Virus record (IMG/VR): IMGVR_UViG_3300050122_000263
Location: 1-64,000 of that record
DNA: 64,000 bases
Reading direction: 5' to 3' (one strand)
Shown here: positions 2,372 to 3,682 of the stretch, one piece after another
Layout: every line of letters starts with the position of its first letter
Numbering within the stretch: the stretch's first letter is position 1
Notes under the pieces: generated by a model
The model's input: only the letters and a program-made list of their open reading frames with translations
Told to the model about the DNA's origin: nothing
Database searches by the model: none
Position numbers and translations under genes: made by a program

Positions 2372-3682
2372 ATGAAAGGATCGGATAAAAGTCGTGTAAT
2401 TAGTGAGGAGACTCTGCTCGGTTCGATCGGTGTTGATTTTCGTCTTCAAGAACGCCTAGGTGGTGGTGCCTTTGGTGATGTATTTCGCTGTACAGATGAG
2501 AACAACAATGAGTTGGCAGCTAAGATCTGCGAGACTGATGAGGAAGGTATTCCAAACATCTTGGAGGCAAGCATCATGACAACTATTTATCATCCCAATC
2601 TCAACCGTGCAGTTCAGGTCTACTCGGTGCCCGGTAAACTCTATATTATTCAGGATTTGGCTCGGTGTGATCTATCTCGTCATGTTCGCAAGCTAGGACA
2701 CAGGCCTCATGTAGAGCAACTCAAAGATTGGCTCTATTCAATAAGTCATGCTCTACTCTGCCTGCATAAACAAAACATTATTCATGCTGATGTCAAAGCC
2801 AGTAATGTGCTACTCTATGCTGATGGCTCTATCCGTTTGTCTGATTACACCCTCTCTGTCAAGAAGTGGTTTGATAATGAGTGTTTCACGAGTGTGGTCT
2901 GTACATCTACTCACCGACCCTTAGAGGTTTTTATGCGCTCACACTGGGCTGAACCGGTCGATATCTGGTCGCTAGGTTGTACATTCTTTGAGTTGGCTTA
3001 TGGCGATCTACTCTTCCCCTATCAGGGCCATCTAGAGCCAGTACCTTATAGTAAGATTGTTAACACGAAGGAGAAGCGGGATGCCCGGCATCGTATCGCC
3101 GGTAGATCCATCAATTGTCTGCTAGACTGGGCTTTACGTGGACCTAATACACCGGAGACAGTGGAAACATTAGCTCAATTCACTGGTTCTCCCACCATTA
3201 GCTACAATGATGTGGAATATCTCCCCTTCAAGCTGCCAGTCGACTTCAATCGACCAGAATACAAAGATTTGAATCGACTCATTCTACAGATGTTGCAGAC
3301 AGATCCCTGGAAACGCCCTGATATCTCTCAGATTGTGAATGATCCGTTCTTCGCCGGTATGCAGCCTCCCAACAGGTATTATGTAATAACAACACCTCCT
3401 GTCAGAATTCCAACTCGGGAACGGGATCGCATTGACCGCTACATCAACCGCTACACTGATAACACACTAGTCAAGAGACTGGCCCTAGAACTGTATGCCC
3501 GTTCACTTAAGCTGAATCTCAATGAACACACCAAGATAGCTGCTGCTATTTGGGTTGCCAGCAAACTGATATTGAGTAATGTGCCGAAATCGATTAAGCT
3601 GCCTGCACATCAAATCCTAATGGCTGAGCGAGGCCTGTGTCACTCGCTCTTCTTTCGCCTACATTCTCTGTCAGATAAGTAA
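2372..3682 (+). CDS. CDK-like Ser/Thr protein kinase with C-terminal cyclin-box-like domain
   Basis: GGGAFGDVF, AAKI, EGIPNILEASIM (PSTAIRE-position helix), HADVKASNVLL, VDIWSLGCTF; C-terminus AAAIWVASKL...ILMAERGLCHSLFFRL resembles a cyclin box. Confidence 0.88.
   Translation: MKGSDKSRVISEETLLGSIGVDFRLQERLGGGAFGDVFRCTDENNNELAAKICETDEEGIPNILEASIMTTIYHPNLNRAVQVYSVPGKLYIIQDLARCDLSRHVRKLGHRPHVEQLKDWLYSISHALLCLHKQNIIHADVKASNVLLYADGSIRLSDYTLSVKKWFDNECFTSVVCTSTHRPLEVFMRSHWAEPVDIWSLGCTFFELAYGDLLFPYQGHLEPVPYSKIVNTKEKRDARHRIAGRSINCLLDWALRGPNTPETVETLAQFTGSPTISYNDVEYLPFKLPVDFNRPEYKDLNRLILQMLQTDPWKRPDISQIVNDPFFAGMQPPNRYYVITTPPVRIPTRERDRIDRYINRYTDNTLVKRLALELYARSLKLNLNEHTKIAAAIWVASKLILSNVPKSIKLPAHQILMAERGLCHSLFFRLHSLSDK

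Follow-up and report, generated by a model that had tools for sequence, protein, structure and literature searches.

The window studied here is a stretch of 64,000 nucleotides that comprises the first 64 kb of the 582-kb (582,007-base) IMG/VR virus record IMGVR_UViG_3300050122_000263. Close to its 5' end it carries a single intact open reading frame (ORF), which encodes a protein of 436 amino acids followed by a stop codon, with a kinase domain, a linker and a cyclin box in that order. Judged from its conserved residues, the kinase is a catalytically competent Ser/Thr kinase of the CMGC group, closest in sequence to the cyclin-dependent kinases (CDKs). The C-terminal tail is, we conclude, a single cyclin box that is divergent and reduced to a minimum; its homologue in cyclins is the N-terminal box. 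Its predicted docking site is formed by the alpha-C helix and the activation loop of the kinase, where it would bind in a cyclin-like manner through the invariant residues Lys398 and Glu419. The protein as a whole is probably a CDK-like CMGC kinase with a minimal cyclin box in cis that holds the alpha-C helix as a permanent activator.

The ORF starts with the ATG at position 2372 and ends with the stop codon at 3680-3682. An in-frame TAA is situated upstream, at 2330, and the ATG is the first one after it. An alternative in-frame start, a GTG at 2360, is possible, and the gene callers applied to 11 public contigs, on which the identical 436-residue protein was called, chose ATG 2372. An earlier, sequence-only reading of this DNA had described a CDK-like kinase fused to its own cyclin-like domain. 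Its architecture, a CDK-like kinase with a cyclin box fused in cis and predicted to lie on the C-helix, was upheld by the present analysis, with the qualification that the fused part is one cyclin box and not the two boxes of a true cyclin. The coordinates of all features are detailed in Table 1.

Kinase domain and catalytic residues

The kinase domain was recognized by the Pfam family Pkinase with 137.9 bits, against a cut-off of 31.7. Among the PDB sequence matches, the best 60 of 2168 were all CDKs, with E values from 1.5e-25 for CDK2, the top match, to 7e-23, and included CDK2, CDK1, CDK3, CDK6 and a Cdc2-like kinase of Cryptosporidium. The kinase motifs quoted in the sequence-only reading were all located: GIPNILEASI (residues 59-68), HAD (138-140), DYT (158-160), PLE (183-185) and VDIWSLGCTF (196-205).

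Conservation was assessed in an alignment (A1) of 69 full-length relatives, 40-52% identical to the protein. The catalytic residues K51, E65, H138, D140, K142, N145, D158, E185, D197 and R315 are invariant in these 69 relatives, and the catalytic set is complete, with the Lys of VAIK, the alpha-C Glu, the Asp of HxD, the Lys and Asn of the catalytic loop, the Asp of DFG and the Glu of APE. The arginine of HRD is replaced by Ala139, a position restricted to A, G or C among the 69 relatives, so that the enzyme is a non-RD kinase; non-RD kinases are typically active without phosphorylation of the activation loop.

In the alpha-C region G59, I63, E65 and M69 are invariant in the 69 relatives. Aligned to GVPSTAIRE of CDK2, the viral GIPNILE shows a two-residue gap, keeps the Gly, Pro, Ile and Glu, and has Leu in place of Arg. 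The activation segment D158-E185 was aligned without gap to CDK2 D145-E172, with D158, T178 and E185 invariant, and the C-lobe insert was unaligned to CDK2 by sequence. The CMGC arginine, Arg182, aligned to CDK2 Arg169 and is kept in 66 of the 69 relatives; because it is kept, the kinase is probably proline-directed.

Thr173 stands at the position of CDK2 Thr160, which is Thr in only 34 of the 69 relatives. The equivalents of CDK2 R50, R126 and R150, the arginines that hold phospho-Thr160 in CDK2 structures, are L or M, A, G or C, and T, V, I, L or S, respectively, in all 69 relatives. As these arginines are gone, phosphorylation by a CDK-activating kinase (CAK) is probably not needed. The positions of CDK2 Thr14 and Tyr15 in the glycine loop are occupied here by Ala-Phe (residues 33-34, window 2468-2473) and by Ser-Tyr in about 60 of the 69 relatives. 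Few family members lack the hydroxyls of both positions, and the protein described here is one of them.

The C-terminal cyclin box and its predicted docking

The stretch that had been read as bearing cyclin-box hallmarks (LALELYARS, AAAIWVASKL and ILMAERGLCHSLFFRL) is present from residue 346 (position 3407). Its motifs are beyond chance, since the domain is kept in 69 of 69 aligned relatives, with K398, E419 and F428 invariant. Modelling of the full-length protein by AlphaFold2 (AF2) with the family alignment gave a mean predicted local distance difference test (pLDDT) of 94.7 and a predicted template modelling score (pTM) of 0.93; the linker was ordered, with a block pLDDT of at least 92 and a beta bridge at residues 337-338. 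The tail modelled alone reached a pLDDT of 88.4.

The tail model was compared exhaustively with 48,161 PDB representatives by VIA-align. Cyclin A was first, in agreement with the cyclin fold that had been claimed for the C-terminus (Z 11.2, 91 of 97 residues, rmsd 2.6); according to the note of the tool itself, helical domains can reach a Z of ~13 by common arrangement, and therefore the fold match alone is insufficient. Cyclin A was followed by K-cyclin (residues 31-146, N-terminal box; Z 11.1), cyclin D3 and cyclin B1. Each of the 36 leading rows belonged to the cyclin-box superfamily, namely cyclins, TFIIB/Brf, Rb and ORC6. K-cyclin and the cyclin of herpesvirus saimiri are both among the best structural matches of the box. 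Cyclins were also on top in the Foldseek search of the tail model against the PDB, and Cyclin_N ranked first in the ESM Atlas shape search with the same model.

Sequence profiles point to the same family. A profile built from 115 family tail sequences (A4) and searched against the PDB retrieved 27 sequences at E ≤10, every one a cyclin (B1, v-cyclin, D1, L2, E1, L1 and H). In this alignment the Lys of the ASK motif (K398) and the conserved Glu (E419) are in register with cyclin B1 and v-cyclin; they correspond to Lys266 and Glu295 of cyclin A, the conserved pair that contacts the CDK. The outcome was better than that of an earlier profile of 69 tail sequences, for which the PDB matches were sub-threshold only (one serine racemase and two cyclins). 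When the 115 family tails were scanned singly against Pfam at E ≤0.1, Cyclin_N was matched in 36 (best E 9.5e-6) and TFIIB in one, and no family besides Cyclin_N exceeded two matches. A word search with residues 340-436 returned only the protein itself. A DAM-like Pfam match obtained with the tail alone was at chance level and was discarded.

To predict the docking, the kinase part (residues 10-335) and the box (residues 340-436) were folded together as separate chains, with the family alignment of each part supplied. The ipSAE score was 0.82, versus 0.01 for the best control. In the calibration of the predictor, 58 of 80 solved complexes attained this mark, as did 2 of 110 mismatched pairs; the runs had at least 94% of the contacts in common, and the pLDDT of the partner was at least 82. 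The alpha-C helix region is the main predicted contact surface for the box. On the kinase side the predicted contacts are T55, E57-I60, I63, L64, A66-T71, A80, V83-P87, K164, W166 and F167; the residues contacted within T55-T71 constitute the alpha-C helix and the preceding loop, and K164, W166 and F167 are placed just past DYT. The box contributes the final part of helix 3 with K398, residues E419, R420, C423 and H424 of the last helix, and the tail F427-S432, which reads F-F-R-L-H-S in the interface. Glu419 is predicted to contact Ile60, at the position of CDK2 Val44. Nearly all conserved residues of the box sit in the predicted kinase interface. Docking on the C-helix, for which the sequence-only reading had suggested an AlphaFold check, is thus predicted (residues 57-71, 83-87 and 164-167), and the surface is the one occupied by cyclin A on CDK2.

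In the mechanism proposed, the conserved linker would return the polypeptide from the C-lobe to the N-lobe. Here helices 3 and 4 of the box and the C-terminal FRLH tail would lie against the alpha-C helix and the first part of the activation loop, with the Lys398/Glu419 pair in contact in the way known for cyclins on CDKs. Being permanently attached, the box would act as an activator that fixes the position of the alpha-C helix. The arginines of the phospho-Thr160 pocket are replaced in all 69 relatives, which makes it plausible that the kinase is constitutively activated by its built-in box and needs neither a separate cyclin nor CAK.

Table 1. Features of the kinase-cyclin box gene and its product, in positions of the window.
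Feature	Positions	Strand	Basis
Whole ORF (kinase, linker and cyclin box)	2372..3682	+	Identical protein on 11 public contigs
Protein kinase domain, residues 24-327, CMGC group, CDK-like by sequence	2441..3352	+	Pfam Pkinase E 5e-40; PDB sequence matches; AF2
Alpha-C helix region GIPNILEASIM, residues 59-69, at CDK2 PSTAIRE position	2546..2578	+	Alignment to CDK2
Catalytic loop H-A-D-V-K-A-S-N, residues 138-145, non-RD	2783..2806	+	Alignment of 69 relatives
Activation segment, DYT to PLE, residues 158-185	2843..2926	+	Gap-free alignment to CDK2 residues 145-172
C-lobe insert, residues 222-296, with long helix 232-256, at CMGC insert position	3035..3259	+	AF2 helices
Linker, residues 328-347, from C-lobe back to N-lobe	3353..3412	+	Ordered in AF2 model
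Single cyclin box, residues 348-432, helices 348-361, 365-377, 385-401 and 412-425	3413..3667	+	AF2; fold and profile searches
Lys398, invariant Lys of ASK motif, end of box helix 3	3563..3565	+	69/69; predicted interface with alpha-C helix
Glu419, invariant Glu, start of last box helix	3626..3628	+	69/69; aligned to conserved cyclin Glu

Relatives, precedents and genomic context

A profile search of 1.84 billion representatives identified at least 237 clusters (at 50% identity) that carry the tail domain, 97 of them at E ≤1e-10; all of these clusters come from metagenomes of giant viruses. Almost all are proteins of 380-680 amino acids with the domain at the C-terminus, and the short ones resemble fragments. 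Ten distant members were sampled; all ten have a Pfam kinase domain and none has a Pfam cyclin match. Relatives of the kinase, 35-50% identical, occur on giant-virus contigs that span a broad clade, and those in IMG/VR are metagenome-assembled genomes (MAGs) of giant viruses. We infer that the label Candidatus Marithrix (a bacterial MAG) on one NCBI-sourced relative derives from a mis-binned viral contig. Box-like matches with weak scores were also found in kinases of Orpheovirus and of Marseillevirus-like MAGs. The metagenomic protein P0128 (1682 aa) is a repeat protein in which 30 separate stretches match the helix-3 region of the box profile (positions 37-69).

The closest named relatives, obtained as structural matches in BFVD, are kinases from the metagenome-assembled genomes of Pithovirus LCPAC304 (A0A481Z8T8, 37% identity, template modelling score normalized by query 0.78), LCPAC101 (A0A481Z1Z7, 32%, 0.78) and LCPAC102 (A0A481Z360, 27%, 0.74). 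They match over the full length, including the tail, and the box model alone also retrieves their C-termini; in contrast to the present protein, they are annotated just as protein kinases, and the aligned ones are longer (461-688 aa). Kinase-cyclin-domain fusion in giant viruses as such is already precedented by annotation. The BFVD entry L7RCF3 of Acanthamoeba polyphaga moumouvirus is named 'Cyclin-domain fused to serine-threonine kinase', and Pkinase plus Cyclin_N are present in 93% of the 67 members of an ESM Atlas cluster of Nucleocytoviricota. As in the protein described here, a giant-virus kinase and a cyclin domain are located within one ORF; the form differs, since in those proteins the cyclin domain is seen by Pfam or by annotators, and here it is missed. 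The alignment of L7RCF3 with the viral kinase was limited to the kinase part (313 columns). No paper on kinase-cyclin fusion in giant viruses was found in the literature searched, the coverage of which was incomplete, and the reviews and genome papers on giant viruses, as far as accessible, report viral cyclins and kinases as separate proteins only. Within the same incomplete coverage, no paper was found that describes a conserved kinase with a welded, pared-down cyclin box and, to judge from the residues, a dismantled pocket for the CAK phospho-site.

The system most similar to that proposed here is CDK2-cyclin A. The viral kinase is nearest in sequence to CDK2, CDK1 and CDK6, its tail has the fold of the N-terminal cyclin box, the predicted contact involves the alpha-C helix, the activation loop and the Lys/Glu pair of cyclins, and the CMGC arginine is kept. 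In contrast to CDK2-cyclin A, kinase and box belong to one polypeptide, there is one four-helix box instead of two five-helix boxes, the alpha-C motif GIPNILE is two residues shorter than PSTAIRE, and the viral family is devoid of the three arginines of the phospho-Thr160 pocket, with the Thr160 position unconserved. Herpesviruses supply CDK-type activity as well: their v-cyclins borrow the host CDK, a viral route to such activity outside host control, and the conserved herpesvirus kinases are viral mimics of CDKs that are not CDK homologues and are not known to carry a fused cyclin box. The v-cyclins and these kinases share with the present protein a viral supply of CDK-type activity. A single-chain CDK was reportedly engineered in fission yeast by Coudreuse and Nurse in 2010, in the form of a Cdc13-Cdc2 fusion that is said to work as an autonomous module; this man-made protein reportedly has a full-length cyclin at the N-terminus and still requires CAK and Wee1 control. 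It resembles the viral protein in having cyclin and CDK in one polypeptide, unlike the viral box, which is minimal and C-terminal.

The virus is a giant virus (Nucleocytoviricota). Among the neighbours of the kinase gene are a D5-type primase-helicase with an AEP_C962R domain, an XRN exonuclease, a collagen-repeat protein, a multicopper oxidase and an FAD/ALO-type oxidase. The virus is called Pithovirus-like because the nearest named relatives of its kinase are the Pithovirus LCPAC304, LCPAC101 and LCPAC102 proteins; the search with the D5 primase gave no named relatives, and therefore the lineage rests on the BFVD structural matches to the Pithovirus LCPAC genomes. The record is classed in IMG/VR as 'provirus', with a CheckV completeness of 61%. 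Both its kinase and its D5 protein recur on a contig of 620,153 bases, so that the record may represent a giant-virus contig that has been trimmed, and not an integrated element.

The gene of the XRN-type 5'-3' exonuclease (window 9312-11759, minus strand) lies 5.6 kb from the kinase gene. Of 14 related IMG/VR loci that were compared, five (L007, L011, L012, L013 and L016) have an XRN gene within 3 kb of the kinase orthologue, and the linkage is kept across genomes whose kinases are just 35-47% identical. Directly 3' of the kinase gene, at window 3770-7224 (plus strand), a three-domain multicopper oxidase (632 aa) and an FAD-binding ALO-type oxidase (496 aa) are encoded; this pair was not found beside the kinase in the related loci compared. 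At window 24675-27914 (minus strand) a protein of 1079 amino acids with long collagen triple-helix repeats and a C-terminal HYR domain is encoded, and the GC content rises locally to ~0.53.

The virus also encodes a free cyclin, since an ORF of 244 amino acids (window 16834-17571, minus strand), at a distance of 13 kb from the kinase-box gene, exceeds the curated cut-off of Pfam Cyclin_N by a small margin (24.3 versus 23 bits, E 2.8e-5); it has no PDB sequence match. Comparison of the tail profile with this cyclin by hhalign was without support (probability 0.5%), an outcome of no weight because the template is a single sequence. The genome holds one copy of the box, among six kinase-like matches, and the kinase-box gene is single-copy. 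A second strong kinase of the genome has 563 amino acids (G000:C1 about 351330-353024, minus strand, equivalent to L006:831-2525), with the kinase domain at residues 101-371. Its tail of 190 amino acids reads cyclin-box-like (L-A-I-D-L-L-Y-R-V, M-A-L-K-M-Y-D and L-D-K-E-L-I-A-I). Compared with the family tail profile by hhalign it aligned in the expected register, weakly (E 0.017, probability 2.7%), and in Pfam it gave no cyclin match and a weak match to Dicer_dimer (E 0.0098).

Alternative readings and biological meaning

Several results weigh against a cis-acting cyclin box on a CDK-like kinase. The Z of ~11 of the box falls within the range that helical domains reach through common arrangement, the best E value of the 115-sequence profile against the PDB (0.0035) is marginal, and the tail of the protein itself gave no Pfam Cyclin_N match when scanned alone and no phmmer match against the PDB. 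One box is present, with four DSSP helices (~90 residues after the linker), in contrast to the two five-helix boxes of cyclins. The predictor may score high through memory of solved CDK-cyclin complexes, so that a pass in the two-chain prediction indicates likeness and not binding. In whole-chain VIA-align, ERK1 and ERK2 are ranked ahead of the CDKs. Finally, the Ser-Tyr pair of most relatives may permit Wee1-type inhibition in the family. The description of the enzyme as 'self-activating, regulation-independent' has thus to be tempered: it is plausible by inference from the predicted CDK/cyclin-like interface and the replaced pocket arginines, and most relatives, unlike this protein, keep Ser-Tyr at the Thr14/Tyr15 positions.

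The ranking of ERK1 and ERK2 raises the possibility of a mitogen-activated protein kinase (MAPK)-like CMGC kinase whose L16-type extension has grown into a bundle that resembles a cyclin box by convergence, without descent from CDK and cyclin. The whole-chain comparison leads with ERK2, ERK1, Fus3 and the fungal MAP kinase Mps1 (Z 29.6-27.7), its top seven rows being phospho-ERK2, and the full-length AF2 model superposes on ERK2 over ~310 residues, as far as model residues 427-429. From this superposition, the linker and the last helix of the box would follow the path of the MAPK C-terminal extension beside alpha-C, where the L16 helix packs, which is an independent hint consistent with the docking predicted for the box. 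ERK-type MAP kinases thus share with the viral kinase the best whole-chain superposition (Z 29.6), an extension that returns to the N-lobe beside alpha-C, and the CMGC insert. They differ in that the viral kinase lacks the T-x-Y motif (it has T-S-V at positions 173-175, where the family consensus is x-H-N), its extension is a whole cyclin box and not one helix, and its sequence similarity favours the CDKs, which lead the PDB sequence searches. Moreover, Cyclin_N is matched by the tails of 36 of 115 relatives, the tail profile retrieves nothing but cyclins from the PDB, and the higher Z of ERK may reflect its longer chain, which spans the insert and the tail. A MAPK origin is therefore considered unlikely. 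The term 'CDK-like kinase' used in the sequence-only reading holds for the sequence matches, and the whole-chain structure is slightly nearer to ERK-type MAP kinases; 'CMGC kinase, CDK-like by sequence' is the safe label. Still less probable is a tail that acts as a TFIIB-, Rb- or ORC6-type module, which would recruit DNA or another protein and not regulate the kinase. TFIIB, Brf, Rb and ORC6 chains score Z 6-10.7, and the model of the protein in the Atlas itself matches TFIIB clusters first; against this, cyclins come first in VIA-align, Foldseek and the Atlas shape search of the tail model, the family tails match Cyclin_N in 36 cases and TFIIB in one, and the conserved residues of the box lie nearly all within the predicted kinase interface. 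A pseudokinase scaffold, which HAD, DYT and PLE in place of HRD, DFG and APE would suggest, is hardly credible and was rejected: these variants do not imply a dead enzyme, because all residues required for catalysis are invariant in the 69 relatives.

With respect to the role of the CDK-like kinase and its built-in box, for which the sequence-only reading had proposed a push on host cell-cycle or transcription states, our best guess, which is a tentative one, is CDK-type phosphorylation regardless of the cell-cycle state of the host, on host proteins, viral proteins or both; the substrates may be viral. An enzyme of the same architecture could serve the viral cycle instead, with targets among the proteins of the virion, of the factory or of transcription, and might itself be packaged; this is a real possibility that we would not yet call probable. 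The gene is single-copy and kept across a wide giant-virus clade at 35-50% identity, its orthologues repeatedly adjoin the viral XRN exonuclease gene, and cedratvirus particles contain proteins named 'cyclin dependent kinase' (PMC12724359), which may or may not be orthologues of the fused-kinase family. On the other side, the free cyclin gene in the same genome hints at an interest in the host CDK system, and the CDK-like determinants of specificity are kept. A more far-reaching reading, which we hold to be rather doubtful, is that of a giant-virus clade with a natural single-chain CDK-cyclin that is permanently assembled, is free of host cyclins and CAK and imposes proline-directed CDK-type phosphorylation on host targets in any phase; under this reading the single-chain CDK-cyclin of the virus described here would also be without the Thr14/Tyr15 brake.

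CDKs are the textbook kinases that are inactive without a separate, regulated partner. Many metagenomic entries annotated as 'protein kinase' conceal a cyclin box missed by the family databases. If the proposed reading is true, the viral protein would reveal the minimal activating part of a cyclin and would offer structural and synthetic biology a CDK-like enzyme that is compact and, in all probability, constitutively active. A single-chain CDK-cyclin would be a natural counterpart of the engineered minimal CDK module and, for giant viruses, a possible route to uncouple CDK-type signalling from the cell cycle of the host.

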